Notes under the pieces: generated by a model | The model's input: the letters and a program-made list of their open reading frames with translations, nothing else | The model's database searches: none | What the model was told of the DNA's origin: nothing | Program-made: the position numbers and the translations under genes | Virus record (IMG/VR): IMGVR_UViG_3300046005_000547 | Span: 124,001 to 188,000 of that record | Strand: one strand, 5' to 3' | DNA length: 64,000 nt | Shown: piece after piece, positions 17,830-63,804 of the stretch | How the letters are laid out: each line of letters begins with the position of its first letter | Position numbering within the stretch: the first letter of the stretch is position 1

Positions 17830-17837
17830 TATAAATA
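17830..17837 (+). promoter_or_regulatory. T4-type late promoter TATAAATA
   Basis: Exact consensus upstream of GAGGAG RBS of 17862. Confidence 0.8.
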
Positions 17838-19237: not shown

Positions 19238-19245
19238 TATAAATA
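19238..19245 (+). promoter_or_regulatory. Late promoter TATAAATA
   Basis: Exact consensus upstream of 19276. Confidence 0.75.
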
Positions 19246-19275: not shown

Positions 19276-20901
19276 ATGACAACATATAAATTATTTGCGG
19301 ATAAATTAGGCGGAACAAATCCAAATGAATTTATAGGAAATAAAGGTGATTTATTTTACGATCCAGACACAGGTAAATTGAGATTATCGGATGGAGTTGC
19401 CGGCGGAAAGAATATAGACATTTTATCAGATAGACCGAAATTATTAGTTTTCGGTAATTCAATCGCTTCAACGCACGCATATAATGCAATATACACAGGA
19501 CAAACCGTAACTGCATTTAATGCAGGCGTAAATACTATAACTTTGTCTGCGGGTGGTGTCGCTGCCGGTGGATATGTTGTTGGGGATACAATAGCCATTG
19601 GTTTAGCAAATATATCACATTTAATTGCTAAAATAACAACTATCGTTGGTGAGGTATTGACTTTAGACAAGTTTACTCCATTACCTTCGAGAACAACAGG
19701 TTCCACTTGCGTTAAATTGACAGCGTCTACTCAATTTAATTTAACGCAAATTAGAGATAATTCTGGATTCTTTTCTATTGCCAATTCGTTATTAGGTTCA
19801 CCATGTAAAACAGTTGGTGCATTTGGATGGGGTGGATCGTGTTTTATAAACAATATCTCACATTTGGGAAATTTCTTGGATTATTATAAACCCAACTATG
19901 TTGCATTTATAGTGTTAGAAAATGATATTGGAGCAGGTCAATCTTCGGATTCATTAATTCGTGCGATAAATCAAGCGGCATTGATGTGCACGTCAAAAGG
20001 AATAACACCAATTTTTAATTATTGTTTACCATCAAATTCAATTGATGATGTAGGTAAATCTACAATTTTTGACACGGTTAATGCATATTTGGAAAATATT
20101 AAAAATGTAATTCCAGGAGCAAAAAGTGTCGATTTTGGTGTAGGTTTGTATTTAGATACATCAGTTAGTGCATCAAGACGACCTTTATCTGGTTGGTCTG
20201 ATGGAGTTCATCCAAATGGAAATAGATATTTATCAATGGCGAAATATGCGTTACCTGAATTATCAAAAATTATTGGAATCAGAGATACAAATACGTCATT
20301 TAATCTCATTTCATCTAACCCGTTATTAACGGGAATCGGTGGAACACAATCTGGTTTGCAAGCAAATTCAATTAGTCCGGCATCTACGTCGATTACTGCT
20401 CCAGCTGGTGTAACGTGTACAACAAGTCGAGATGCGAATGGGTTTTTGAAAGTTGATTTTACAATATCAGGCGCGTCAGATATTTTGAACACTCAAATTA
20501 CAGTTTCACAAACATTAACCAATTTACACACACAAGTGAGTGGGGAAAAATCTCCATGTAGCGCAAATACGTTAATTAGAGGTATTGTGGTATTGGATAA
20601 CGTTTCTATGCATAACGTATCAATGTTACAACTAAGCGTAACTAGTGGTTCGATGGTCGCGGATGTTAGGAACACAGCAAATTATGGTAACGGACTAACA
20701 CAAGTTAACGATTTAATCGATGACGTATTTGTTATTGAAACACCCCCTCTATTGTTATCTGATTCAACTGCAACAAATGTTAGTATAAAGTTATCGATAC
20801 GACCATTAACTTTATCATCACCTTCTGGAGTGACTGGAAGTTTTGTAATCAAGGAGTTTGGATTACAAATTAGTGATGACGTATTACCATTATACAAATA
20901 A
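19276..20901 (+). CDS. Virion/tailspike-like protein with SGNH/GDSL esterase domain
   Basis: N-terminal GDLFYDPDTGKLRLSDG attachment-type motif; LVFGNSI, GWGG, END, DGVHPN SGNH blocks. Confidence 0.7.
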   Translation: MTTYKLFADKLGGTNPNEFIGNKGDLFYDPDTGKLRLSDGVAGGKNIDILSDRPKLLVFGNSIASTHAYNAIYTGQTVTAFNAGVNTITLSAGGVAAGGYVVGDTIAIGLANISHLIAKITTIVGEVLTLDKFTPLPSRTTGSTCVKLTASTQFNLTQIRDNSGFFSIANSLLGSPCKTVGAFGWGGSCFINNISHLGNFLDYYKPNYVAFIVLENDIGAGQSSDSLIRAINQAALMCTSKGITPIFNYCLPSNSIDDVGKSTIFDTVNAYLENIKNVIPGAKSVDFGVGLYLDTSVSASRRPLSGWSDGVHPNGNRYLSMAKYALPELSKIIGIRDTNTSFNLISSNPLLTGIGGTQSGLQANSISPASTSITAPAGVTCTTSRDANGFLKVDFTISGASDILNTQITVSQTLTNLHTQVSGEKSPCSANTLIRGIVVLDNVSMHNVSMLQLSVTSGSMVADVRNTANYGNGLTQVNDLIDDVFVIETPPLLLSDSTATNVSIKLSIRPLTLSSPSGVTGSFVIKEFGLQISDDVLPLYK

Positions 20902-20918
20902 GATTTCTTTACTCAATA

Positions 20919-20956
20919 AAAATCCCATCAGACTTTTACATCTAATGGGATTCTTT
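20919..20956. terminator. Bidirectional intrinsic terminator
   Basis: AATCCCATCAGA..TCTAATGGGATT, near copy of 12383. Confidence 0.8.
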
Positions 20957-22011
20957 TATTTCATTTTCAACAATAATTGTTCATATACATTTGTAGCAAC
21001 GTTTGCCATCATAACAGGAGGTACAGACATACCACAAGCATAATCTGGTTTTACCTTACCAAAATTGAAATCCAATGGAAACGAACTAGCCAATATGAAT
21101 TCTTTATCAGTCATTGTTCTTGGAATAAAATGATGATAACAAGATTTACCAGAAGTCAATGTATTACAAGGTTTATCTGGGTGTAATTTCTTATATGAAA
21201 AGAAATTACCATTCGATAATTCTGATTTATCAAATCCAGATCCAGGTTCCACTGATGGATATATATCACGAATCGAAGGTGGTAATTCTTTATCTGGAAA
21301 TACATCATCTTCAGATATATCTTTAAATGGAATAATCGGTTCATTAAATTCCATTTGTATTCTTGGTAATAATTCTAATCCTTTATATTCCAAGAATTGT
21401 TCGCCTAGATCCTTCCTCACACAAATAAAGAACACCCGTTCCCTTTTTTGCGGTAATCCCATCTTAGAACCATCTAATAAGAAATGTTGACAGTAATATC
21501 CAGCTTCATCAAATTCCTTGTATATTCTATCAACATATTTCATTGCCTTACCGAGAATCAACCCTTTGACATTTTCTGCCACGACAATCTTCGGTTGAAG
21601 TTTCTTTGCCAAATCAATGAAATCAAAGAACAATGTATCCAAGACTTGTTTTGCTTGACCTTCCGAGAAGACTTTTTCCTTACCCCAATCTTTATCTCTA
21701 TTACCATTCATGGAAAAAGAAGAGCAGGGTGGACTACCATCAAGGATATCCAAGTTGTATAATTCTTCAGGAATATCATCTCTCTTGACGAATTCCCGTA
21801 TATCCTGAATGAAGGAATACTTTGGATTATGATTCAGATTGTAAATTTCATTCATTCTTGGATCTATCTCAACGCAACCTAAGACATTACCTCCAGCTAG
21901 TTTATATCCCATTGTAGAACCACCACAACAAGCGAAACAACTGAATACGGTAAATTTATCTTTGGTGAATGTCGTTTCCGATAAATTCCATTCATATGGG
22001 AATTTATGCAT
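20956..22011 (-). CDS. DNA (cytosine-5) methyltransferase
   Basis: FACCGG (motif I), GSPPC (IV), ENV (VI), QKRERVF (VIII), GMSVPP (X). Confidence 0.93.
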   Translation of the reverse strand: MHKFPYEWNLSETTFTKDKFTVFSCFACCGGSTMGYKLAGGNVLGCVEIDPRMNEIYNLNHNPKYSFIQDIREFVKRDDIPEELYNLDILDGSPPCSSFSMNGNRDKDWGKEKVFSEGQAKQVLDTLFFDFIDLAKKLQPKIVVAENVKGLILGKAMKYVDRIYKEFDEAGYYCQHFLLDGSKMGLPQKRERVFFICVRKDLGEQFLEYKGLELLPRIQMEFNEPIIPFKDISEDDVFPDKELPPSIRDIYPSVEPGSGFDKSELSNGNFFSYKKLHPDKPCNTLTSGKSCYHHFIPRTMTDKEFILASSFPLDFNFGKVKPDYACGMSVPPVMMANVATNVYEQLLLKMK

Positions 22012-23077: not shown

Positions 23078-23905
23078 TCATAATATGAATGTTTTCAATT
23101 CAAATTGTTCATGATATTCTTCCACAGGATATCCATATACATTTAACAAGATATTGGTTTCTCCTATTTTATAATTTCTTGGAACATCATGAACATGACC
23201 ATGGATCCAATAATTTATCCGTTCATTCTGAATTATATAGTCATCAAAATGATTTGTGAATAAATCGTTCCAGAAATTACCTTTAAATTTATCTGGAATA
23301 CCTTGTGGAGTGGGACAATGATGCGATATTACAATAACATTATCTACATCAGTTGATTCAATCTGTTTAGATACGTAATAGATGAAATTGTCACATTTCA
23401 TTGAAGTGTCGGATGGCAACAATTTCCCTAATTTATTGGTATAATATCCAGTTGTATTTCTATCCGAATTTGAAATGTAAATGTAATCAGAGAATCTGTT
23501 TAATGCTTCTACTTCCAATACAGGATCTTTTATCTTTGTCCAACAAGTACCACCAATGAATAGATTATTATCTATTGTAATGGATTCATTCTCAAGGATA
23601 TGAAGATTTGTATATTGTTTAAGAGTTTTACGTAAAACGGAAACATCGTTTATATCTGAATCATAAAATTCATGATTACCTAATACGTAAATGATATGTT
23701 CAAATTGATTTGTTATGTTATCGAAGAATTCTGTAATGTAATTTGATTCACCATTCATCTTCAAATCATTGAATGCAAGACGTGTATATTTTATTGGTAT
23801 AATATCACCAGCAAGGATTAACATATCAGCATTATTTGTATTGAACAACGATAGATCTTTATTATGTTCTAAATGTAAATCTGAACAATAATTTACAATC
23901 ATCAA
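23078..23905 (-). CDS. Calcineurin-like metallophosphoesterase
   Basis: SDLH, AGD, GNHE, SHH, HGHVH motifs. Confidence 0.92.
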   Translation of the reverse strand: MMIVNYCSDLHLEHNKDLSLFNTNNADMLILAGDIIPIKYTRLAFNDLKMNGESNYITEFFDNITNQFEHIIYVLGNHEFYDSDINDVSVLRKTLKQYTNLHILENESITIDNNLFIGGTCWTKIKDPVLEVEALNRFSDYIYISNSDRNTTGYYTNKLGKLLPSDTSMKCDNFIYYVSKQIESTDVDNVIVISHHCPTPQGIPDKFKGNFWNDLFTNHFDDYIIQNERINYWIHGHVHDVPRNYKIGETNILLNVYGYPVEEYHEQFELKTFIL

Positions 23906-24099
23906 ACATCTCCGTTAATGGAAATCTCAAACAATAACATCATTATGGAAAATAACATCATAGATAATCCAACCAATAAAATGATGAATTCCCCAGTTGA
24001 AAGAAACAGACATAATCCAAAGACTGTGATACATACACCAATGATGGATTCTGTATCAATCATTGATTCGTTAAAATGTTTCATAATAATTACCAACAT
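23902..24099 (-). CDS. Small membrane protein
   Basis: Two hydrophobic segments; overlaps both neighbours. Confidence 0.5.
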   Translation of the reverse strand: MLVIIMKHFNESMIDTESIIGVCITVFGLCLFLSTGEFIILLVGLSMMLFSIMMLLFEISINGDV

Positions 24100-24970
24100 T
24101 TAATAATTTACAACCCAAGTCAGTCCATAACCTGACAACTTGTTTTCTATCGTCTATTACAACTTCAACATTCCAATTATCCGATACATGATTAAAGAAC
24201 AGTTCCTGTTTGGCAATTCTATCTTTACGAGTATCACCTTCTGCTCTCATGTACAATAGATAATTCCCACCAAAATGTTTATTCAACCATTCTGTTGTAA
24301 CATCTCTGGAAATTGAATCTCTACCCGATAAAAAGATAATCTTGAAACCATCTCGTCTGTACATGTCGATGATGTTTAAGATTTCCTTGATAGGTTCATC
24401 AGTTCCTGCTTTCCCGAAGTCGTATGGATTTCTATTTACCATTTTAGCGACTGTTCCATCAATATCACAGACAACTGCTTTTGGTTTAGATGTATCTTTG
24501 ATATATTCGGGAATCTCAATACAATCTCTTGGGAATTGTAACCACTGGAACCATTGTTTATCAATTACATCAATACCAACTGATTCTGTACGTTTCTTAT
24601 CTCGTTGGATAGCAGTTTCATAATCAACTGGAAAGTATTTTAATTTAGTTGTATATCCATGAGATTCCATTTCCTTGATATTTTTATCAAGATACTTCTT
24701 ATTGAGATTTGTATTGGAGAAGATGATGTCTTTACCTTCAGATACGTATTTTTCAAGTAGAGTGTCTATTCTTTTGTCAACAATATGTTCATTTTTGAAA
24801 TTCCATATCTTCCATAGAAATCCTTCCTTGTAGATATTTTCTTCTTGTAATATCTGTTTACGAATCTGGTCGCGTTCGATGATAACGTAATTTGGATTTT
24901 CTTTAACAAAATGTTCAGCCCAGTAAGATTTACCAGAAGCAGAAACCCCAATTGTGAAAATTGTTTTCAT
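24071..24970 (-). CDS. pseT: Polynucleotide 5'-kinase / 3'-phosphatase
   Basis: GVSASGKS P-loop; DIDGT, SGR, DDR HAD motifs. Confidence 0.93.
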   Translation of the reverse strand: MKTIFTIGVSASGKSYWAEHFVKENPNYVIIERDQIRKQILQEENIYKEGFLWKIWNFKNEHIVDKRIDTLLEKYVSEGKDIIFSNTNLNKKYLDKNIKEMESHGYTTKLKYFPVDYETAIQRDKKRTESVGIDVIDKQWFQWLQFPRDCIEIPEYIKDTSKPKAVVCDIDGTVAKMVNRNPYDFGKAGTDEPIKEILNIIDMYRRDGFKIIFLSGRDSISRDVTTEWLNKHFGGNYLLYMRAEGDTRKDRIAKQELFFNHVSDNWNVEVVIDDRKQVVRLWTDLGCKLLNVGNYYETF

Positions 24971-32861: not shown

Positions 32862-33779
32862 CTAAAATCTAGTTAAATGACATTCTTTAACGAAATCATC
32901 CCAAAACGTTCTGTCAACAGTTTCTGGATAATCAGATTTGTTTGCCAGCATAGTGACTTCTTCCACCAGAGCAGATAACATTGGTTCAACTTCATTGAAA
33001 TCTATTTTACCTTGTTTGACATCTAAAAGAAACTTCGATTCTACCAATGGATATTCAAATCCTCCCTTGGTATAGATATCTCTAGCCTGGTAGCCGGCTC
33101 TTAGGGAATGTCCGATGGCCTTCCAGTCCACGTTCATATTCAATTTAGCTAATTTAGAACGTTCTCCATACGTATCATAATGTTTCCGTAAAGAATCTTT
33201 AAGATGGAACAATTTCAGATTGTCCTGATACTTACTACCACAAATCTCCAAGTATCGATTATCCTTATAATCAACCCATTTTACGACATCAGATTCATCT
33301 AATACAATTTCAGATACAGTTTGATTGTCCGACATTTTTAAGATGATATTCAACACTCGTTCAATCTCACCTAATCGACTACCTTTGGAACCATATTTGG
33401 CTGCTTGTTTTCTTACGTAACCAATATAAGATTTCATTGATTTGGTATAGAATCGATGTCTGTTTGATACAAGGAATTCCCATATCTCTGAAGTATGAAT
33501 CCATTTATCGGAACTACCAGCTAAAAGATCTAGACAGACCGTTTCTCCAGAACAAGCCATGTTAATGAAATACTGTAAAGAGTAATATGTTCTATCAACA
33601 TCTTCTTTTGAATTCTTGATGGCAGATGTATTGGTTGATTTATCGATATGGTAAGATGTTTTACCTAGTAAGATTTCATCTCTGGTTGGTAATACAATTC
33701 CCTTATAATCATAATCTGATTCAGGAGTTTCCAAACCATATAGTCTTGAACCAAATAAAGATTCACATAAAATAACCAT
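32862..33779 (-). CDS. Pol-beta superfamily nucleotidyltransferase (T4 NrdC.11 / RlaP-like)
   Basis: FGSRLYGLETPESDYDYKG; GYVRKQAAKY; DWKAIGH; start taken at ATG 33779 (ORF open to 33848). Confidence 0.85.
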   Translation of the reverse strand: MVILCESLFGSRLYGLETPESDYDYKGIVLPTRDEILLGKTSYHIDKSTNTSAIKNSKEDVDRTYYSLQYFINMACSGETVCLDLLAGSSDKWIHTSEIWEFLVSNRHRFYTKSMKSYIGYVRKQAAKYGSKGSRLGEIERVLNIILKMSDNQTVSEIVLDESDVVKWVDYKDNRYLEICGSKYQDNLKLFHLKDSLRKHYDTYGERSKLAKLNMNVDWKAIGHSLRAGYQARDIYTKGGFEYPLVESKFLLDVKQGKIDFNEVEPMLSALVEEVTMLANKSDYPETVDRTFWDDFVKECHLTRF

Positions 33780-33881
33780 GTAATTGCTCTCTAATGTTGT
33801 TTTAATATGTTTGCTGTGTAGTTGATTGTCATTTATATAAACAATCAACTACGTCCATTTTAGATGGACTATACAATGAAT

Positions 33882-34341: not shown

Positions 34342-35463
34342 ATGACCAGCAATAATATCTATATCGATAAAATAATCGAATTATGTTCAGATAATGAACA
34401 AACAGCAGAGTATATCTCCATCGTATCCAATGCTCGAATTCGATCATCTAATAAAAAAGAAGCAAAGGTGATTTTGGGATACACCGAAGAACACCATATA
34501 TTACCCAAATCGTTTAAGATGGGTGGAGAAACAGATAAATTAAATTACGCTTATCTATCTGCAAGAGAACATTATCGCGTCCATCAATTGTTAATAGAAA
34601 TGGGATTGAAACGTAATTTACACGAGAAGATGATTCATGCGTTTTGGTTGTTAAGTGTGTTGGACAAACACAAGTCCATATCCGAAGAAGAATATCAAGA
34701 GTTGAAGATTTTAAGAAGCAAATATCATAATTGGAAAGATCCCGAATGTATTCAAAAATGTAGAGATACGTATTTCGAGAAAACTGGATTCACCCATAAT
34801 ATGAAAGATCCAGAATGTAAAGAAAAAAGTAGAGATACACATTTTGAGAAAACTGGATATACTCATTATATGAAAGATCCCGAATGTATCCAAAAGTGTA
34901 AAGATACTCTTTTTGAAAGAACTGGATACACACATCATATGAAAGATCCAGAATGTATCCAAAAGGGTAAAGATACCAATTTTGAGAAAACTGGATACGA
35001 CAATCCTATGAAAAATCCAGAATGTAAAGAAAAGAATAAACGAGCCTTGGAAATAAAATATGCTAGACCATTAGTCTTACAGATTCTACAAGACGTAGAA
35101 AAATATAATATTATTAATCCAAGAAAAATTATGGGAATCAATGACCCTAATTGGAGACACGTCGATGATGAAAAACTGGAAGAAGGATCTATCAAGTTCT
35201 ATAAACATTTAGATGAACGTAAAATCAAGATAAAGGAATACGAATGTAGGATAAACGAGATTAGTTCCACATTTAAATCAATAGATGATAAACGATCCTT
35301 GATTTCATATATCAAAGAAATCAAGGATTTTTATAATATAACAAATTATACTGGTATAATGGAAGTGGATAGAAAGTGGAAAAGGGGTTTAAATGTGCTA
35401 GAATTACAAATTGCATTAGAAAAATTATTGAAACATACCGTTGATAAATTCTATATGAATTAG
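34342..35463 (+). CDS. Free-standing HNH-type homing endonuclease with 23-aa repeats
   Basis: YTEEHHILPKS..GG..N..LSAREHYRVHQLL; ACTAAATA late promoter and hairpin leader. Confidence 0.85.
   Translation: MTSNNIYIDKIIELCSDNEQTAEYISIVSNARIRSSNKKEAKVILGYTEEHHILPKSFKMGGETDKLNYAYLSAREHYRVHQLLIEMGLKRNLHEKMIHAFWLLSVLDKHKSISEEEYQELKILRSKYHNWKDPECIQKCRDTYFEKTGFTHNMKDPECKEKSRDTHFEKTGYTHYMKDPECIQKCKDTLFERTGYTHHMKDPECIQKGKDTNFEKTGYDNPMKNPECKEKNKRALEIKYARPLVLQILQDVEKYNIINPRKIMGINDPNWRHVDDEKLEEGSIKFYKHLDERKIKIKEYECRINEISSTFKSIDDKRSLISYIKEIKDFYNITNYTGIMEVDRKWKRGLNVLELQIALEKLLKHTVDKFYMN
34735..35035 (+). repeat. 69-bp coding repeat, ~4.4 copies (KDPECxxKxxDTxFEKTGYTHxM)
   Basis: Unit starts at 34735, 34804, 34873, 34942, 35011. 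Confidence 0.92.
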
Positions 35464-36985: not shown

Positions 36986-37620
36986 GAACCAAAACTTTTA
37001 ACTAAATAAGATTGAACAATTAAAAACTTTGAAACGCACGAAACTCCATATAAAACGAACAAAAATATAAATAAATTTAAAAAATATAAAATTGAATACG
37101 TAGAAACATCATAAAGTAAAAATCTAGTTCCAAAGCTGAATAGAAGTCCAACGAAAGAGGTCCGTCGAATAGTTGGCACACATTGAAAGGTTCCTCCCAA
37201 ATAATTGTAAACAATTAGATAACTATTGACTTATAGGTAAGTATAGCGATGTCTACGGGGTATGCAAACGTCAAATTGTGTGATAAAAGTCTTTATTTTT
37301 AAAGACAGGATGTGGGTGACTATAAGTTTGACCACACCATTGTTGAAGTCGCTAGAATTGGCTCAACAATGCCCCGTTTGAATCGCGAGATTGTAGACAG
37401 TCGTAAAAGGAAACCGGCAAACCCTCCTTACTTTTTCAGAAGTTGACTAATTCTAGAGTGCCTTTCGGAAGAAGCACACTTTACTCTGGTAGGGTAAGAA
37501 GTGCCTTTCGGGTTGCACTCGATGCAACATCTATATACAAAAAGCGACAGATAATCTGCGTAAGCGCAGCGTCGTAGATTATTAAACGAGCGAAGCGAGT
37601 TTATGGCTTTTGCTTTTTAC
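36986..37620 (+). ncRNA. Candidate large structured non-coding RNA (family unassigned)
   Basis: Promoter, locally raised GC, many nested stems, several loop-to-distal complementarities, U-rich end. Confidence 0.7.
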
Positions 37621-45911: not shown

Positions 45912-46373
45912 ATGGGAACAATGAAATCGGAGCAATCTGCACCCGTACCACTAACAGCAACAGGTTTAGCCACTTTAGCGGCTGCAACGTATTGTGTGTC
46001 GGACACCAAAACCAATACAACTAACCAACCGTATGACGTGATTTTAAATGTCAACGTTAAATGTGCAACAGGCGGTACGCTTGCAAATCGTCAAGTCGTC
46101 GTGTTTGGTCAAGCAAGTTTGGATGGTACGACGTGGCAAACAGGCGCAACAAGCGGCACATCAACGGTTAATGAAGGTGACTTAACGTTTTTAGGAACAG
46201 TATCGGTTGCTGAACAAAACGTTAGCCACATTAGAAATTTTAGTGTATTGCAAGCGTTTGGCTTCGTCCCTGCTCATGTGCGATTTGTGATTAAAAATGA
46301 CATCGGTACAGGTACCTTGCCGCTTGTGGAAGGCACATTATCAACGTCTGAAATCACAATGACGTATGCCTAG
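45912..46373 (+). CDS. Putative virion beta-sandwich protein
   Basis: T/G/A-rich; ASLDGTTW. Confidence 0.6.
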   Translation: MGTMKSEQSAPVPLTATGLATLAAATYCVSDTKTNTTNQPYDVILNVNVKCATGGTLANRQVVVFGQASLDGTTWQTGATSGTSTVNEGDLTFLGTVSVAEQNVSHIRNFSVLQAFGFVPAHVRFVIKNDIGTGTLPLVEGTLSTSEITMTYA

Positions 46374-48651
46374 CGTTAGCCAGCGAACTGTCCGTACCAC
46401 ACAACCGCAAACCGCAGTCGGAATTGATTGGTCAAATCCGATAACACGCGGTTTAGTTGCGTGTCTTGATGCGAATAGACGGGTATTGATAAACGGTAGT
46501 GAAACCCGACCGCTAACGCTAACTAATCCCGTCCGTCGTGCGTCACAACAAGAATATGGCTCGACGACATATCAAGGAACAATGCAAGCAATTAAAGCAC
46601 CGCCTGCTGCGTCGTCAAACGTTACCATGTTGTCGCTTTTCATTCCATCGACCGAAGTTGCAGAAAGAACTTACGGACAGTTAGGGCAAACCGCATCGGG
46701 TAATATGTTTTCTGTTGCGTCTGGGGACGGCACAACGGCTGGTGTTGTTAGGTTTAAAATTTATCTTGGTAGTACGCGAATAATTGGCGCATCGCAAGCT
46801 AATGCAGGTGTACCGAACCTTGCTATCGCACGTCATATCAATGGACAGTCGCAGAATTTGTGGTTGAACGGTGTAAAAGATACCTCAGGTGGTGCATTTA
46901 CAGGCAATAGTGTTGGTTTTGGGTATTACGGATTTAATCATAGTAGCGGTACAGGCGCGTCTATTCTTAACGCTGTTTGGAATCGCGCATTAACTGATAC
47001 TGAAATCAAATCGTTATCTGAAAATCCTTGGCAAATTTTCGTGCCTGAACGTCGTATTGTTGCGTTTGATGCGGCTGTTGTTAGTGGGGTGATTGATTTA
47101 CCTATTTTTGGTGTAGAAATAGATTCTAATGTTGAATCCCCAATTATTTCAACATTAGAATCCCCAATTAATTCTGTATTGAGCGTATGTTCTGCAGAAA
47201 ATGTAATACATTCATCTTTTAATGATTTATCCAATACTCAATCGATTTCATTTATTGGTATTCCAAATGTAATTGGTTCATTTAATTTATCTTCGATTGG
47301 TTTGACCGGTGGTGTAGGGAATGTATCTGTTTCCGTAAATGAATCGTCTTCGATAGAATTATCAGGGATCTCATCAGGATTCGGAGATGGATTCGTTACA
47401 AAATTGATAAATGTGTCGTTGAATGGATTATCTTCTAATGTTGGAATTGGTGATATTTTTAAAAATGTACAGAAATCTATCACCAATATACAATCTAATG
47501 GATTATTAAATTCATTTAATGTATTAAATGATGGTTTCGTAATAGGTTCATCAGCGAATGTATATATTGGATTAACATCAAGTCTAATAAATAAACAAAT
47601 TTCTGATGTAAATTCTATTTCTGATGTAAATGATTTGTTGAATACAAGAAGTAATTTATTGAATGGGATATCGTTAAATTCGAGTTCTGGAACCATGAGT
47701 AACGGATCGCTGAAAATTATTCAATCTTTATATTCAAACGTTTCATTAGGTAATATCGCAAACGATACAAATAAAATTATTGTTGGTAATAATTCAACAC
47801 ACAACGTTGGAATTTTACAAATTTTAGCAGCCAATGATATATCTTCAACAATTTCCTCTGTAATGGGATTATTGAATTTAGGATTATTGCCGTCATCTAG
47901 TTCTTCTGTTGTATCATTGACAAATAATGCATCTATTTTAAATTTTGGAATTATTAATAAATCTATATCAAGAAACGTATTATCAAATAATGTAAATGTT
48001 TATTCTGGTAATCTAGATAAATCGTTTAACAAAATTGTTAATGGAATTTTGATTAGTTCTAATGTAAATGGATTATCTTCTAAATTCGAAAAACAAATTA
48101 TACAAAACGTATCTTCTGTTTTAATCAATGGATTAAATGTTTCTTCAAATTTTGATATATCTTCGAATTTGATTACAAATAATCTATCATTTTTAGGTAA
48201 GAATGTAACTAAAATTATTCAACAAAATTCTATAAACGGATATGTTAATACGATGTATCCAGAATTGTTGGGATATTTTCAAGAATTAGTTGGTATATCC
48301 TCATCATTATATCAAGGAAATTTCAATAAAAATACCTCAAAAATGATTGATTCAATTTCTGGGTATTCTGAATTAGGGTTTATTGATGTGAATCTATTGT
48401 TTGGTTTGACGTCAGACAATATAAATGTATCGTTGAATGATTTAGATGATTTGTTTCGAGATAATGTTTTGTTACCAATTCTATTGAATTCTGAAATAGA
48501 TGGAATGTATACGTCTAAACAATTTTTGAAAATCTTGGCAACCGTCATTTATTTCAATTCCATAAAAGATAGTAAATTGAATTTCAACACAATAACAGAT
48601 ATTAATAGATTAAATTTTAATACCATAATAGACAAAAAGGGGAAATTTTAA
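46366..48651 (+). CDS. Fibre-like protein with LamG/ConA-like N-terminal domain and S/N/I-rich stalk
   Basis: LWLNG..AVWNRALTDTEI (LamG-like end motif). Confidence 0.65.
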   Translation: MPSVSQRTVRTTQPQTAVGIDWSNPITRGLVACLDANRRVLINGSETRPLTLTNPVRRASQQEYGSTTYQGTMQAIKAPPAASSNVTMLSLFIPSTEVAERTYGQLGQTASGNMFSVASGDGTTAGVVRFKIYLGSTRIIGASQANAGVPNLAIARHINGQSQNLWLNGVKDTSGGAFTGNSVGFGYYGFNHSSGTGASILNAVWNRALTDTEIKSLSENPWQIFVPERRIVAFDAAVVSGVIDLPIFGVEIDSNVESPIISTLESPINSVLSVCSAENVIHSSFNDLSNTQSISFIGIPNVIGSFNLSSIGLTGGVGNVSVSVNESSSIELSGISSGFGDGFVTKLINVSLNGLSSNVGIGDIFKNVQKSITNIQSNGLLNSFNVLNDGFVIGSSANVYIGLTSSLINKQISDVNSISDVNDLLNTRSNLLNGISLNSSSGTMSNGSLKIIQSLYSNVSLGNIANDTNKIIVGNNSTHNVGILQILAANDISSTISSVMGLLNLGLLPSSSSSVVSLTNNASILNFGIINKSISRNVLSNNVNVYSGNLDKSFNKIVNGILISSNVNGLSSKFEKQIIQNVSSVLINGLNVSSNFDISSNLITNNLSFLGKNVTKIIQQNSINGYVNTMYPELLGYFQELVGISSSLYQGNFNKNTSKMIDSISGYSELGFIDVNLLFGLTSDNINVSLNDLDDLFRDNVLLPILLNSEIDGMYTSKQFLKILATVIYFNSIKDSKLNFNTITDINRLNFNTIIDKKGKF

Positions 48652-53983: not shown

Positions 53984-54565
53984 TTAGTTGAAAAGATTTG
54001 GAGCAACTTCTGTCATTTGACGTTCAATTTCCTGCGCAACTAATCTGATTTCATATTGAGCTTCTTTTGTGTTGCGCAATTTAATGAAATCCAACCATGC
54101 TTGGAAATTACCAACAACATTTAATGAGGTCGGCGAGAAATTCGGAAGCACCATTCTAGCGTCTTCTTTCTTTGCACCTAATGATAATAATTTATCATAT
54201 TGTTCATAAGAATGTTCTAATGATTCTTTTAATACAATAGATGCTTCTTCAGATGTTTCAAAAAATGGCGGAACTTCTAATTCCAAGAGTTCGGATACAT
54301 CTGATTTGGTGTAACGTTGACTCTTTTGAAGGAAGTCAAGATGTTTGGAACGAACCATTTGATGAGAACAGACTCTTGAGATGTCAGAGATTCTGAAGAC
54401 AGCATGAGCAAAACGTAATACCGCAAGATGACCTTTTGATGAACAATGTTTGGCACGTTTTACATTTTTATCAGGATCTGATATATCGGCACCATAACAT
54501 TCTCCTGCTACAATACCTAAGAATTCTTCTGCGTTTGGTGTAACAAATAACAATTCAACTTTCAT
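53984..54565 (-). CDS. thyX: Flavin-dependent thymidylate synthase
   Basis: GH..ISRVCSHQMVR..QKSQRY..EDARMVLP..R..AQYEIR. Confidence 0.92.
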   Translation of the reverse strand: MKVELLFVTPNAEEFLGIVAGECYGADISDPDKNVKRAKHCSSKGHLAVLRFAHAVFRISDISRVCSHQMVRSKHLDFLQKSQRYTKSDVSELLELEVPPFFETSEEASIVLKESLEHSYEQYDKLLSLGAKKEDARMVLPNFSPTSLNVVGNFQAWLDFIKLRNTKEAQYEIRLVAQEIERQMTEVAPNLFN

Positions 54566-57107: not shown

Positions 57108-57323
57108 ATTTTCTCCTAGTTGAAAAACTATATTATAATCTATTATATCAGAAACGAAAGAATAAAGATATAATACATCTTATTTGTTGAATACACAACG
57201 AAAACAATACATCCTGTATGATATATTGTTCTAATCATTAACATTGTTTAAACGACAAATAAGATGTATTATAACTGATATTTTATCCAAAAGAAATCCC
57301 ATCATTTTATTGATGGGATTATC

Positions 57324-58498: not shown

Positions 58499-59368
58499 TT
58501 ACACCACAGTCAACGTTGCAGCTGTTGTTAATTTAGGTGTAGCATTTGTTGCCGTCACATTACACGTATACTTTTTACCATTCAAACCAGTTGTATTTGA
58601 AATGGTCAATGTCGCGGTCGTTGTGCCGGTATAAACACCCACGTTTGTTAAATCAACGCCATCGACTTTCCATTGGTAACTTAATGTACCACCACCAGCC
58701 GAAATTGTAGCAGTCGTCGCAAATGTTGTTCCAGCAGGAGCAGTAATTGTTCTATTTGTTGGAGCAGACGCTGAAATTACAAATGGATCTTTCATTCGCA
58801 ATTCGCCAAATTTAGTAGTCACAGTATCAGCATTAGCTGCAGTTACAATACAACGATATTTCTTACCAATCAAACCAGTCGTAGAAGAAATAGATAACGT
58901 ATTTGTCGTCGCTCCTAAATAAACACCAGTATTGGATACGTTGGCGAATGTTTTATTCGAAGCAGAAACTTGCCATTGGTAACTTAATGCACCACCACCA
59001 ACCGAAATAGTCGCTGTTGTTGAAACGGTTGCTGCAGTTCCTTCGAAGATTACACTTGATGCTGGATCTGTAGCTGAAATTACATAAGTTTGAGTCGCAG
59101 TTAAATTGGCATCCACTGCTCTGGTGACACCAATTGAATATCCAGAATTCGATGCTGGATTTAACAATTCAGCTTTATGTCGAGTTGTTCCAGCGGAATC
59201 TTTATACGTAAAGTATTTCCAATATCCTGAACATGTAATCCCTTTCAATTTAGTGTCTGGATCGTCAGCTTCCGCTTGAGATACAAAAATTACATTTCTT
59301 CTATCATCTTCCGATAGAAATGACGGTAAATTGGTTTCCGTATCTGTTCCAAATTTCCATGTACCCAT
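58499..59368 (-). CDS. Ig-domain (Hoc-like) virion decoration protein
   Basis: Two LSYQW..GxTTxTLxIS..KYxCxVT Ig repeats; TATAAATA at 59407-59414. Confidence 0.8.
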   Translation of the reverse strand: MGTWKFGTDTETNLPSFLSEDDRRNVIFVSQAEADDPDTKLKGITCSGYWKYFTYKDSAGTTRHKAELLNPASNSGYSIGVTRAVDANLTATQTYVISATDPASSVIFEGTAATVSTTATISVGGGALSYQWQVSASNKTFANVSNTGVYLGATTNTLSISSTTGLIGKKYRCIVTAANADTVTTKFGELRMKDPFVISASAPTNRTITAPAGTTFATTATISAGGGTLSYQWKVDGVDLTNVGVYTGTTTATLTISNTTGLNGKKYTCNVTATNATPKLTTAATLTVV

Positions 59369-59423
59369 TTTGTTTGTTCCTTATAAAAATAATAGTGGTA
59401 TGGAATTATTTATATGGATGTAT

Positions 59424-60356
59424 CTAACGATGCGCAGATAATCTCGCAGATTCAATTTTCTTGATTTTTGGTAACAATTTATTTGCCAATTTTGTGATAG
59501 TTGCTCGTTTCTTCTGAACCATCTTTTCCAATCTTTCTTTTTCAGGAATCGATAATGTATTCAGAGGTTTCTTAGCCATTTTTGTTTTAAACGCAATAAT
59601 GGCAGCATGTCTTGCTCTGGAAGCAATTTTAGCTGGAGATGATTTTGTATGTAATGCCAATTTCATTTTAGCGGTTCGTTTCGATTGAGATTGATGAAAT
59701 TTAACAGCCATTTTCAATCGAGCCATTCTACTTAACATTTCATCAAGACGTTCCACAGATTCATTAGTTGGTACATAAGGATCTACAATACCTGGATGAA
59801 TATACCCCATATGATTATCTTCATCATCAACAATATGTAATTCATCGTCGTCATATACATCCATACCAATTAAATCTTCTAAATCTCCGATACTGTCGTA
59901 AATATCATCAACAACATCATCGTTAATTCCAATTAAATTCCCGAAAATATCTTCTGTTGTTGTATCGTCTTCTAAATCATATTCTAATTCTTCAACTTTA
60001 CCGTCATTGTCGATATCTCCATCAATCTTACCATCTTTATTCTTATCTTGTAAATGATCTGGAATATCATCATCATTGAAATCTGTATAAGATTTTCTTG
60101 GTACATTATATAATGAATCCATTGTACCACTAGATGTGGCTTCATTTACTCGTTTTCTTAATTCTTTGAATGTTTGCATTGGTTTAACCGATTCTGATAC
60201 TGTTGAAATAATGACATTCGATGCCGTCTTTTTAAGAGCATCGGGGATTGTCTTGTCGTCTTTTAATCTTACCATCATTTTCTTCTTAAAATCTTTATCT
60301 TTTGGATTTAAGTCAAATGTATCGGCAAGCATCTGTAATAATTGTTCGTCTTTCAT
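59424..60356 (-). CDS. Acidic/basic bipartite protein, possible head-internal
   Basis: Internal MQTFKELRKRVNE; D-rich middle with EF-hand-like DKNKDGKID; K/R-rich C-terminus. Confidence 0.65.
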   Translation of the reverse strand: MKDEQLLQMLADTFDLNPKDKDFKKKMMVRLKDDKTIPDALKKTASNVIISTVSESVKPMQTFKELRKRVNEATSSGTMDSLYNVPRKSYTDFNDDDIPDHLQDKNKDGKIDGDIDNDGKVEELEYDLEDDTTTEDIFGNLIGINDDVVDDIYDSIGDLEDLIGMDVYDDDELHIVDDEDNHMGYIHPGIVDPYVPTNESVERLDEMLSRMARLKMAVKFHQSQSKRTAKMKLALHTKSSPAKIASRARHAAIIAFKTKMAKKPLNTLSIPEKERLEKMVQKKRATITKLANKLLPKIKKIESARLSAHR

Positions 60357-60380
60357 GAGATTCCTCTATTCAATATGTTA

Positions 60381-60926
60381 TTATTTATGTATTAAACATT
60401 CCCATATTTCAAGAGCTTCCCTATAATGACATTCATGGGGTAACATTTTATAGAAAGAATTGTAATCATTATTTTCAACATATTCTCTCATTTTAGAACT
60501 GGAATAGGATGACGGTCCAATACCAAATCTTTCACCTCTTGATACAATTTCAACAGATTTGAATTCAAAATAATCTCTTGTATTTAAAAACAAATCGAAT
60601 CGAGTTTTATATTCATCAAATCTATCTTCACCGCATACCACTATTACTTTTTCATATTGATTTTGATGTGCGTAATGTAATAGATTGATTGGTTGTTTTA
60701 CTTTTTTATCATAATCAATCTTAACAAGTCCGTCTGTCCATTTGTTCATCAACAACGATTTAATCTCATATGGTAAAGGATTTTTGTTATTGTCTTCTGT
60801 GTGAGATAAGAACATAGCAGAATCAGCATTGTATTTCTTAGCCAACTCCTTGATTTTAGAAATCAATAAGAAATGTCCTTTATGTGGTGGATTGCATCTG
60901 GCAAATGAACAGACTAATGTTTTCAT
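60381..60926 (-). CDS. Cytidylyltransferase-like HxGH nucleotidyltransferase
   Basis: FARCNPPHKGH, NPLPY..K, CGEDR, SSSKMR. Confidence 0.88.
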   Translation of the reverse strand: MKTLVCSFARCNPPHKGHFLLISKIKELAKKYNADSAMFLSHTEDNNKNPLPYEIKSLLMNKWTDGLVKIDYDKKVKQPINLLHYAHQNQYEKVIVVCGEDRFDEYKTRFDLFLNTRDYFEFKSVEIVSRGERFGIGPSSYSSSKMREYVENNDYNSFYKMLPHECHYREALEIWECLIHK

Positions 60927-61774
60927 TGTTTCATCAACTCCTTAAATTCTAATGTTGTAACTTTATACCATGTATCGTTAATCTTAAACATAATACCTTC
61001 AAACATTTCTCCCATTAAATTGGTTCCGACAACCTGAGATAAAATATATTCAGAAAACAAATCTTTACGTTCTTGTAATACATGTTTGATTGATTCTTTT
61101 TGAACCTTATCTATTTTCTTTCTTGATGTTAAAATTTGTTCAACATTTGGTATGTCCAATACTTTGAACACCCATTCTAATTCTTTCAGAATATTGACAT
61201 TTTTGAATGAGATGAACGGATTAATGAATTTGTAATTATTATTTGATTCCATTAACAAACCATCAATTATTTGTTTTGATTCAGGATGTTCTTCATTATA
61301 CACTGAATCTAAGACAGTGTGTGGGAATAATGTAGCAACTTGCCCCAATAATGGACAAGGATATGCGATATGTACAAATTTGATTGTATTCATTCGCATT
61401 GGAGTCAATCCATTTTTGTACATTAGAACTTCCATACAAACTTCTGTATCACAAGGAATACACAAAAATCCATTCAAATATGAATCAGCCAAATCTCTAT
61501 ACATTTCTGCTCGTTTGATTTGTAAAGGATCTGTAATTCCTTTCAATTCGATATAATCAATGAATTCTTGACCTCTGTAAATTTCACCAGAATTGCTTGT
61601 TTTAACATAAAGTTTTCCTGATAATTCTTTACCAATTCTGAATCCAAATCCATCAATTTTTAACATGACTGGAATATCAGAAAGGATGTCCCCTTTTTGT
61701 TTAATTGTTTTTAACATATTGATGAATTCAATATCTTTCATCTTATGTACATGTTGAACAGATTTTCTAGTCAT
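60923..61774 (-). CDS. ATP-dependent ligase-fold protein (putative)
   Basis: LKIDG (motif I), EVL, FEGIMF (IV), YKV (V). Confidence 0.55.
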   Translation of the reverse strand: MTRKSVQHVHKMKDIEFINMLKTIKQKGDILSDIPVMLKIDGFGFRIGKELSGKLYVKTSNSGEIYRGQEFIDYIELKGITDPLQIKRAEMYRDLADSYLNGFLCIPCDTEVCMEVLMYKNGLTPMRMNTIKFVHIAYPCPLLGQVATLFPHTVLDSVYNEEHPESKQIIDGLLMESNNNYKFINPFISFKNVNILKELEWVFKVLDIPNVEQILTSRKKIDKVQKESIKHVLQERKDLFSEYILSQVVGTNLMGEMFEGIMFKINDTWYKVTTLEFKELMKQ

Positions 61775-62831
61775 TGTTTAATCCTCTTGAATAATAATCA
61801 GATATTATCTTACTATAATTTACATCTAAATCAATATCTAATTTTTCGCATATAAACATCAATCCTGTAACTTTTTCATCATAATCTTTAACAGGATTAT
61901 CTCTTACAATCATCTGAGAGTTGACACTAAACATCCTACCAACATAATCATCTACAATCGATTTAATATGTTCTGGTAGGAATCGTTGAATCAATCTAAT
62001 ACATCCATTGAATGATTTTATTTCATTCTTATACATCAATGATTTTACTCCAAACAATATCTCAAGGATACTATCCAAATCTGTATGGAATATCGATTCA
62101 TCAGATGTCAGTTCATTAAATACAGGAATTCCATTATCAAACAATTCAGTTGGTATGTATCGCCAACGTAATCCTCGTTGAACAGAAAATGCTAATTGAC
62201 TTTTTTCAACAATTTTTGGTTTCTTTGTTTTTCCTGTTAACAATACAATTCGTTCTTTTGTCCTTGAAGCGGCAATAGATTGTAACATGTATTTGTGATG
62301 GAATCCTTTAATGTCTTGAATTATATCATCCCATGAACTAGAATGTGAAAATTTACTCCATTCAGTGGGTTCTCCGTTTTCAAATTCAACCAGTTCAAAA
62401 TCAATCTGAATGTTGAGATTAAATTGATTGAAATGCCATAATGTGATGTATTGACCAGCAGATGTCTTATATCCAATTAGTTTCCATTTTTCAAAATCAA
62501 CATATCCAGTCAGACTATCAAGCATTCTTCTGATTGAATCTTTCGTGTTAATATCAACCATCAAATCAATATCACCAACTGTATCCTTTTTCAATACAAA
62601 TTGATATGTTGGTATATCATCTACGTTGAATAGATGATATGATGAACCAGAAAGGAATTGTTTGGAATTGAATAATGAATCATTCCAAATTTGTCGTTTA
62701 TTGAACGTATTATGTAATTGATTCAATGTTGATAACAATTCATCAACTTCTTGGACTAGGGTATCTCTGTCAACATGTAATAAATCAATCCTGTCTGCTT
62801 TGATACCATCAATTATAACATTTCCACCCAT
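61767..62831 (-). CDS. Pol-beta-like nucleotidyltransferase (putative)
   Basis: MGGN start; LSGSS..GDIDLMVD..QIDFE acidic triad. Confidence 0.65.
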   Translation of the reverse strand: MGGNVIIDGIKADRIDLLHVDRDTLVQEVDELLSTLNQLHNTFNKRQIWNDSLFNSKQFLSGSSYHLFNVDDIPTYQFVLKKDTVGDIDLMVDINTKDSIRRMLDSLTGYVDFEKWKLIGYKTSAGQYITLWHFNQFNLNIQIDFELVEFENGEPTEWSKFSHSSSWDDIIQDIKGFHHKYMLQSIAASRTKERIVLLTGKTKKPKIVEKSQLAFSVQRGLRWRYIPTELFDNGIPVFNELTSDESIFHTDLDSILEILFGVKSLMYKNEIKSFNGCIRLIQRFLPEHIKSIVDDYVGRMFSVNSQMIVRDNPVKDYDEKVTGLMFICEKLDIDLDVNYSKIISDYYSRGLNND

Positions 62832-63771: not shown

Positions 63772-63804
63772 AAACCCGATAGAGATTTTCGCTCTATCGG
63801 GTTT
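63772..63804. terminator. Intrinsic terminator
   Basis: AAACCCGATAGAG..CTCTATCGGGTTT. Confidence 0.85.

Follow-up and report, generated by a model that had tools for sequence, protein, structure and literature searches.

What could three different nucleotidyl-transfer folds be doing in one string of overlapping phage genes? The locus that raises this question lies in a 64,000-nucleotide stretch (the window, bases 124001-188000) of the IMG/VR virus record IMGVR_UViG_3300046005_000547, a complete genome of 234,735 bp with direct terminal repeats. An earlier note on the window had described overlapping genes for a Pol-beta-like nucleotidyltransferase (NTase), a ligase-like protein and an HxGH transferase, followed by an acidic/basic protein. 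We conclude that the three enzyme genes, NT354, LIG283 and HIGH181, make up a single three-enzyme module that is conserved among large T4-like phages and occurs here in split form, and the linkage of the NT, LIG and HIGH families is our main new result. These genes and the open reading frame (ORF) that follows them, AB310, were confirmed at the following window positions:

61767-62831, minus strand: NT354, a putative Pol-beta-superfamily nucleotidyltransferase (PHROG 19290)
60923-61774, minus strand: LIG283, a predicted covalent (lysine) nucleotidyltransferase of the ATP-dependent ligase superfamily
60381-60926, minus strand: HIGH181, an HxGH (HIGH-superfamily) nucleotidylyltransferase
59424-60356, minus strand: AB310, an acidic/basic, probably non-enzymatic protein (PHROG 23027)

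The three enzyme genes are translationally coupled. The overlaps that the earlier note had pointed out measure 8 bases (ATGACTAG) between NT354 and LIG283 and 4 bases (ATGA) between LIG283 and HIGH181. A small upstream ORF meets NT354 in a TAATG junction with a 1-base overlap, and HIGH181 and AB310 are separated by a 24-base gap carrying an AGAGGAA ribosome-binding site.

Many other phages keep the three genes together or fuse them into one protein, and it is on this ground that we treat them as one conserved machine. Hidden Markov model (HMM) scans of 151 retrieved LIG-family proteins revealed 85 stand-alone proteins, 43 NT-LIG-HIGH fusions (29 of them long-tailed, up to 2078 aa), 11 LIG-HIGH fusions, 6 NT-LIG fusions and 6 proteins combining LIG with another tail. 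NT was therefore fused upstream in 49 and HIGH downstream in 54 of the 151 representatives, and the order of domains (NT, LIG, HIGH) was always that of the genes in the window. All five of the giant fusions scanned contained the three-domain core, and the tails of fused proteins included ParB_N, Amidoligase_2, a second NTP_transf_2 and DUF6934. Two metagenomic phage contigs encode chaperones of the DnaJ and ClpB types and, a few genes further downstream, a giant NT-LIG-HIGH fusion (L009:2340-5554 and L012:473-3553); a protein combining ParB_N with a chitinase-19-type lysozyme lies downstream in L009.

Linkage without fusion was also widespread. An unfused NT gene lies upstream of LIG in eight lineages, comprising this genome, loci L006, L007, L008, L020 and L022 from other phages, the Xanthomonas phages BUDD/X1 and the Stenotrophomonas Menderaviruses, of which Moby is an example, and HIGH follows downstream of LIG in six of the eight. 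Genes inserted between NT and LIG encode a calcineurin-type metallophosphoesterase (L022:3490-4029), a Fic-domain protein (L020:1735-2064) or, in Moby, BUDD and L006, proteins of 314-388 aa that are unrelated to one another and to NT or LIG; a 333-aa insert in BUDD, considered as a relative of NT354, proved unrelated. Between LIG and HIGH, L007 encodes a DUF6321 protein (L007:4970-5398). Many longer PHROG families have the same domain at their C-terminus, so a common use in docking or targeting is conceivable.

Among cultured phages, four groups (Stenotrophomonas, Campylobacter, Vibrio and Xanthomonas phages) matched both the NT and the LIG-HIGH queries, with near-identical record counts (39 for NT, 38 for LIG-HIGH). 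Vibrio phage Va1 and Campylobacter phage CP220 each encode a protein of ~480-500 aa with divergent ligase-like and HIGH domains, in which the ligase-like motifs (KTDG/KYDG, E, EG and K) aligned in register. In CP220 the NT and LIG-HIGH genes are 66 kb apart; cultured groups with NT thus all carry LIG and HIGH, even when the genes are unlinked. The 823-aa gp101 beside the NT homologue of CP220 was considered as a fusion of LIG, HIGH or AB310 domains and found to be unrelated. The earlier note had named co-conservation and a ligase fold in the middle ORF as the two points on which its proposal could fail; the genes are co-conserved, being fused in many phages and syntenic in eight lineages, and the middle ORF models as a ligase (see below), so neither result refuted the idea of a module.

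A further counterpart is found in T4-like cyanophages, where a DUF6267 gene (PHROG 455, annotated in cyanophages as 'similar to gp183') is followed by a 'cytidyltransferase' matching the HIGH family at E 4e-36, reproducing the order of a LIG-like and then a HIGH gene. DUF6267 is a remote homologue of LIG283 with KWDG, EG and K motifs of its own, and is itself abundant (at least 499 clusters at 90% identity), occurring in 313 sequenced phages, mostly marine T4-like cyanophages. The system nevertheless differs from that of the window in that LIG283 is missed by the Pfam model of DUF6267 and that no NT354 homologue was detected adjoining DUF6267 in S-CAM8. DUF6267 was also compared with NT354 as a possible divergent relative and rejected (hhalign probability 0.1), its relationship being to LIG283 instead.

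The fused proteins resemble polyvalent phage proteins in their length (0.9-2.1 thousand residues), in combining several unrelated enzymatic domains and in lying near virion genes (PMC5512222). They hold 3-6 domains, and the window version consists of single-domain genes. The hub domains of polyvalent proteins (zincin peptidase, ArdC) were, however, not found in the fused relatives here, and in the polyvalent set of Iyer et al. 2017 RNA-ligase and HIGH domains were not reported and Pol-beta NTases occurred only in versions from conjugative elements (PMC5512222).

NT354 belongs, on its motifs and predicted structure, to what we propose is a new family of Pol-beta NTases. It had no Pfam or NCBIfam match, but matched PHROG 19290, to which no function is assigned, at E 6.6e-32; a word-index search returned 98 homologous clusters, every one unnamed, and its neighbours in the ESM Atlas carry the name nucleotidyltransferase. 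G62 and S63, D87-I-D89 and D144 were invariant across 55 homologues, as were an N-terminal GGN, K175 and K180, and these residues correspond to the predicted Pol-beta NTase catalytic set (hG[GS], [DE]h[DE]h and a third carboxylate). The AlphaFold model (pLDDT 94.5) placed pol lambda and pol beta first in Foldseek (E 4e-4, TM ~0.33), and an exhaustive VIA structure search returned TUT7 (Z 7.7) and OAS2 (Z 7.5) for the palm only, with TdT (7.5, 176 residues), pol beta (7.3, 181 residues), pol lambda (7.0) and ASFV PolX (6.7) matching palm and thumb over 164-184 residues. All of the best matches from both searches were enzymes of the Pol-beta superfamily, in agreement with the earlier assignment of a Pol-beta-like NTase from the GS..DID..D motifs.

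The family X DNA polymerases (pol beta, pol lambda, TdT and ASFV Pol X) share with NT354 the superposable palm and thumb and the catalytic set of GS, DxD and third Asp. They differ from it in having 8-kDa or helix-hairpin-helix (HhH) fingers: NT354 starts straight at the palm, pol beta alignments begin at residue 135-142 and cover palm plus thumb only, and no 8-kDa/HhH DNA-binding domain and no Pfam DNA_pol_B_palm or thumb match was seen. With a TM of only ~0.33 and no sequence-level match to family X, NT354 is modelled as a family-X-like palm and thumb with an extra C-terminal helical domain. Nor did NT354 match the RlaP model PF10127, whose sole match in the genome lies at window 32862-33848.

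LIG283 is predicted to be the nucleotidyltransferase domain of an ATP-dependent-ligase-superfamily enzyme with lysyl-NMP chemistry. A word search gave 3 matches and library scans left its identity open, with no Pfam match, including DUF6267 (PF19782), PF09511 and PF09414, and no DUF6267 match at its genome locus; an exhaustive profile search recovered 326 representative proteins (50% identity clusters), 146 of them with E <1e-30. Across 136 domain sequences the ligase motifs were 97-100% kept, namely K39/D41/G42 (motif I, reading K39-I-D41-G42 in LIG283), E115 (III), F133/Y138 (IIIa), E259-G260 (IV) and K271 (V), and in a 44-sequence alignment the same residues were mostly invariant (E115 and F133 at least 90%). 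K39 is the predicted active-site lysine. The structural model was of lower quality (pLDDT only 78.5), yet the Foldseek PDB top 50 were all ATP-dependent RNA or DNA ligases, and in the Foldseek-independent exhaustive VIA search the top 38 rows were all ligases or capping enzymes, led by RNA ligases (Naegleria Z 7.5 over 188 residues, REL1 6.8, T4 Rnl2 6.6), with capping enzymes at Z 4.4-5.0. The middle ORF therefore models as the ligase fold that the earlier note had read from KIDG..EG..K. A shape search of the ESM Atlas retrieved DUF6267 (TM 0.70), a PF09414 RNA_ligase cluster (TM 0.53) and 750-990-residue proteins bearing CTP_transf_like, and a single distant relative, P0186, matched PF09414 at E 1.2e-3, below the cut-off.

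Profile-profile comparison clearly supported homology between the LIG family and DUF6267 (hhalign probability 94%, E 1.3e-7, 213 columns), in which KWDG, EG and K are invariant. Since the Pfam DUF6267 model is silent on LIG283, we regard the two, on these profiles, as sister families rather than LIG283 as a member. All 283 residues of LIG283 align with the nucleotidyltransferase domain alone, and the following gene already begins 4 bases ahead of the LIG283 stop; neither the structure alignment nor the ORF boundaries revealed an OB-fold domain after the nucleotidyltransferase domain. Naegleria/Deinococcus Rnl5, trypanosome REL1 and T4 Rnl2 share the fold and motifs I, III, IIIa, IV and V, and likewise lack the DNA-ligase OB domain. 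LIG283 differs from them in its ~10-14% identity, in a single lysine in motif V, in an insertion of ~110 residues that separates motif IIIa from motif IV and contains a basic, helical, conserved stretch (residues 211-246), and in lacking the flanking domains of Rnl2 and Rnl5.

HIGH181 matched PHROG 3041 'cytidyltransferase' (E 1.8e-40) and PHROG 395 (E 8.7e-21), and fell below the cut-off of 21 against Pfam CTP_transf_like (PF01467; E 0.016, 15.9 bits). Its motifs are H15-K-G17-H18 and S-S-S-K-M-R147; the HxGH and SxxxxR motifs were conserved and G17, H18 and R147 invariant in 16 homologues, consistent with the HxGH transferase of the earlier note. A profile of these homologues matched the archaeal NMN adenylyltransferase (NMNAT) 1ej2/1f9a at E 7.5e-6, NadM 2qjt and, as the sole full-length match, NaMNAT 2h29 (E 1.3e-5), so that by profile NMN/NaMN adenylyltransferases are its nearest solved relatives. 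Archaeal and NadM-type enzymes share its length (~170-180 aa) and the GRxxPxHxGH and SxTxxR motifs. In contrast to them, the NMNAT matches of HIGH181 lie mainly in the ATP-binding N-terminal 60 residues and many of its relatives are fused to a ligase domain, an arrangement that we do not know from any NMNAT. A 512-aa HIGH protein encoded outside the window (genome 62037-63575, plus strand) was considered as a LIG-HIGH fusion and rejected as dephospho-CoA kinase/PPAT-like; it combines an N-terminal dephospho-CoA-kinase-type P-loop (GITGPVASGKS) with a C-terminal PPAT-type HIGH domain (GSFNPFTIGH ... ISSSFVRG) and would thus join, in one phage-borne protein, the enzymes of the last two steps of CoA synthesis.

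We tentatively read the module as a polynucleotide end-repair relay, most likely acting on RNA, a reading to which we give slightly less than an even chance. The substrate would be tRNA or mRNA cut by host nucleases: NT354 would extend a recessed or trimmed 3'-OH, by one nucleotide or a few, and LIG283 would self-adenylylate at K39, pass the AMP to the 5'-phosphate and seal the break. HIGH181 would carry out an NMNAT-like reaction (ATP + phospho-acceptor -> A-5'-pp-5'-N compound), either providing an NAD-like adenylyl donor or cofactor or acting directly on a 5'-phosphorylated end, the A-pp-N linkage being that of both NAD and an adenylylated 5' end; this step is the least certain of the relay. 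RNA is favoured because LIG283 has no OB domain, its match list is headed by RNA ligases and a phosphoesterase is inserted in L022. The weak RNA_ligase match of P0186 and the terminal uridylyltransferase that gave the best Z for NT354 are further points on the RNA side.

The closest precedent, from phages and bacteria, is the pairing of the Pol-beta NTase RlaP (PF10127) with the ATP-dependent RNA ligases Rnl1/Rnl2, to which it is genomically tied. The predicted role of this pairing is to replace 3' nucleotides that were lost and then to seal (PMC7824862), and RlaP was recently shown to extend the 3' ends of damaged RNA by one or two nucleotides (bioRxiv 10.64898/2025.12.29.696909). The module would follow the same logic, but NT354 lies outside PF10127 and LIG283 outside PF09414/PF09511, its partners are often fused and a HIGH-type enzyme is a constant third member.

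Several points weigh against RNA end repair. The functions of all module members are inferred, and neither NT354 nor LIG283 gave anything meaningful against PDB sequences by single-sequence or profile HMM search. Structural Z scores did not exceed 7.7, a range that the tool calls common, and since close structural relatives are lacking the fold assignments rest on motifs and consistent match lists. The longest structural alignments of NT354 are to family X DNA polymerases, an equal fit to DNA gap filling, and a complex prediction for NT354 with LIG283 scored 0.01, which gives no verdict either way. HIGH-type transferases are, to our knowledge, absent from the known RNA repair systems, which makes the third step conjectural. 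Finally, a second RNA repair system needs a reason, as the genome already has a full Pnkp/RlaP/Rnl2 set:

24071-24970 of the window: Pnkp/PseT (kinase and HAD phosphatase)
23078-23905 of the window: metallophosphoesterase
32862-33848 of the window: RlaP (PF10127)
19365-20657 of the genome record: Rnl2-type RNA ligase (PF09414) with a PHA02142 OB domain

PseT, the metallophosphoesterase and a second NTase, here identified as RlaP, had been pointed out before and are all real, and the NT/LIG/HIGH module is separate from, and additional to, this canonical kit. A homing-endonuclease-like ORF (window 34342-35463, plus strand) adjoins the RlaP gene, on the opposite strand within a minus-strand block. 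As for the counter-defence pathway proposed in the earlier note, its folds and co-conservation stood, and counter-defence itself is a hypothetical role; among RNA repair, NAD rescue and DNA or protein nucleotidylation, the evidence leans to polynucleotide (RNA) end repair.

It is unlikely that the module instead performs DNA gap filling and nick sealing, a minimal base-excision-type repair in which NT354 would be a mini family-X polymerase and LIG283 a nick ligase, maintaining a hypermodified genome. Such a role would fit the alignments of NT354 to TdT, pol beta, pol lambda, pol mu and ASFV PolX (164-184 residues, Z 6.7-7.5), the scores of DNA ligases against LIG283, nearly as high as those of RNA ligases (Z 6.6-5.5), and the primase and helicase genes near the module. 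Yet DNA ligases need the OB domain that LIG283 lacks, NT354 is without the 8-kDa/HhH domains and Pfam palm or thumb match of DNA polymerases, and known DNA repair offers no part for a HIGH enzyme to play. In favour of a DNA role, hypermodification genes were present in every carrier examined (ADDT here, DpdA/QueC/QueE in Moby, BUDD and CP220), and queuosine-type genes (QueE/DpdA) flank the module in BUDD, Moby and CP220; these genes are, however, common in large myophages and are not adjacent to the module in this genome, where the relevant features are:

190678-191595 of the genome record, outside the window: ADDT/aGPT-Pplase (amino acid:DNA transferase) gene
198168-199373 of the genome record, outside the window: second ADDT/aGPT-Pplase gene
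53984-54565 of the window: short thymidylate-synthase-like ORF
20956-22011 of the window: C5 cytosine methylase

From this gene content, the DNA of the phage is probably hypermodified on thymidine. 7-Deazaguanine DNA modification was considered as a requirement of the module and rejected, as this genome is without TGT or QueC.

In a further, unlikely reading the three enzymes would form a nucleotidyl relay: HIGH would produce an A-5'-pp-5'-N compound for the ligase-like domain to use or to install, and the Pol-beta enzyme would then extend the other end. This compound might serve as an NAD-like donor, or it might be a polynucleotide end that is adenylylated or carries an NAD-type cap. RNA or DNA ends would then be marked or re-activated by chemistry unlike any described repair or capping pathway, conserved from cyanophages (DUF6267 and 'cytidyltransferase') to Campylobacter, Vibrio and Stenotrophomonas phages.

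Also rather unlikely is a role in cofactor or signal metabolism, in which HIGH181 as an NMNAT would restore NAD+ together with NadV, and NT354 and LIG283 would make or destroy nucleotide-derived small molecules such as dinucleoside polyphosphates or oligoadenylate-like signals, blunting NAD-depleting or nucleotide-signalling defences. The profile of HIGH181 matches NMNAT/NaMNAT, OAS2 and cGAS-like receptors are among the structural matches of NT354, and this genome and that of L006 carry NadV without another NMNAT-like gene. The only other HIGH protein here being of dephospho-CoA-kinase/PPAT type, HIGH181 could double as an NMNAT in this phage. Moby and BUDD, however, have a separate, NMNAT-sized HIGH gene (352-355 aa) adjoining NadV besides that of the module, and CP220 and Va1 have the module and no NadV, so that HIGH181 as a plain NadV partner is weakened and NAD salvage is unlikely to be the conserved role. 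Free NAD synthesis would leave the constant fusion of HIGH to the ligase unexplained, and the ligase motifs are those of polynucleotide-joining enzymes.

Decoration of RNA ends is improbable. It would place a cap-like dinucleotide (NAD- or App-type) on the 5' end and a tail on the 3' end of phage transcripts or small RNAs, resembling the sets of capping enzyme and poly(A) polymerase in large eukaryotic DNA viruses. Capping guanylyltransferases share the fold and motifs of LIG283 (Z 4.4-5.0), terminal uridylyl- and poly(A) polymerases are among the best matches of NT354, and an NMNAT-like enzyme makes exactly the N-pp-A linkage, but RNA ligases outscore capping enzymes for LIG283, no OB domain, triphosphatase or methyltransferase partner accompanies it and there is no known phage precedent. 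It is highly improbable that the targets are host or virion proteins, to be AMPylated or otherwise nucleotidylated by the three transferases. Protein AMPylation is known from both Pol-beta NTases and Fic enzymes, a Fic-domain gene lies between NT and LIG in L020 and virion genes adjoin the module in several phages, but the Fic insert was seen just once and the ligase motif set and PolX/TUTase-like thumb indicate nucleic-acid substrates.

Whether AB310 takes part in RNA end repair or in any of these pathways is a separate matter. It has an acidic middle (~residues 90-190) and a very basic C-terminal 150 residues, as the earlier note had said; the capsid-targeting-like internal motif also claimed there was not verified as such. 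AB310 matched no Pfam family, and PHROG 23027 is without assigned function; a feature search of the ESM Atlas gave sub-threshold leads only. An AB310 homologue with a conserved basic C-terminus follows HIGH in L006 and L007. The C-terminal profile found no matches in the fused proteins or other loci, and AB310 is therefore not a domain of the module. It is probably a neighbouring basic nucleic-acid-binding protein rather than an enzyme, judged by its charge profile, and probably stands outside the enzymatic pathway. The ortholog in L007 (L007:6047-7735, 562 aa) begins MKTYQSLF, with L-I-E at residues 22-24; we take this MKTYQ start to resemble the capsid targeting sequence (CTS) of T4 IPII/IPIII, and the L-I-E to be, presumably, the kind of site cut by the T4 prohead protease. 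The CTS concept is set out in PMC9026906. AB310 is thus possibly a capsid- or virion-internal protein.

The remaining features of the locus frame the gene string, which is enclosed by two hairpins (63804-63772 and 57320-57295):

63772-63804, minus strand: terminator-like hairpin with a 13 bp stem, 5' of the string of small ORF, NT, LIG and HIGH
59407-59414, minus strand: perfect T4-type late promoter TATAAATA, between AB310 and the Hoc-like gene
58499-59368, minus strand: Hoc-like Ig-domain head decoration protein, a neighbour outside the module
57295-57320: second terminator-like hairpin, closing the far end of the unit

The late promoter at 59407-59414 marks the downstream limit of the transcription context of the module, and a near-late-promoter, CATAAATA, lies 25 nt 5' of the AB310 ATG. 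Within the window, TATAAATA was observed in 4 copies against 13.8 expected by chance (plus strand: 17830-17837, 19238-19245 and 37066-37073; minus strand: 59407-59414), at least 3 of which (17830, 19238 and 59407) lie directly 5' of a gene start, and its use seems to be restricted to late promoters of the T4 type. A Hoc-like gene lies beside the module in phage Moby too.

The gp61-type primase, RNase H, ribonucleotide reductase, Hoc-like protein and TATAAATA late promoters identify the phage, by its gene content, as a T4-like myophage. Identical copies are present in IMG/VR (loci L004 and L005), and megablast of the region against sequenced phages returned no match, none being close at the DNA level. 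The window has a G+C content of ~31%, and its most G+C-rich 2 kb (0.377) contains a 761-aa ORF without a PHROG match (window 46366-48651, plus strand).

A literature search on DUF6267, 'cytidyltransferase' and HIGH NTases with RNA ligases yielded no description of the module, within a coverage that did not extend to the RNA-repair survey of Burroughs & Aravind 2016. The three families have been without assigned function (PHROG 19290, the DUF6267 sister family and PHROG 3041/395), and the 'cytidyltransferase' next to DUF6267 in cyanophages has been a conserved gene long unexplained. Through the fusions, what had been three isolated annotations can be tested as a single hypothesis, for which catalytic residues are named and Moby, BUDD, CP220 and Va1 are culturable carriers, and the module enzymes are possible reagents (OB-less ligases, a terminal transferase). 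If RNA repair is the true function, this would be a second, independently assembled system of Pol-beta NTase plus ligase, and no earlier one would have had a HIGH-type transferase among its members; if the function is a different one, such as cap-like marking, DNA gap repair or NAD-linked chemistry, the module would represent new phage biology.

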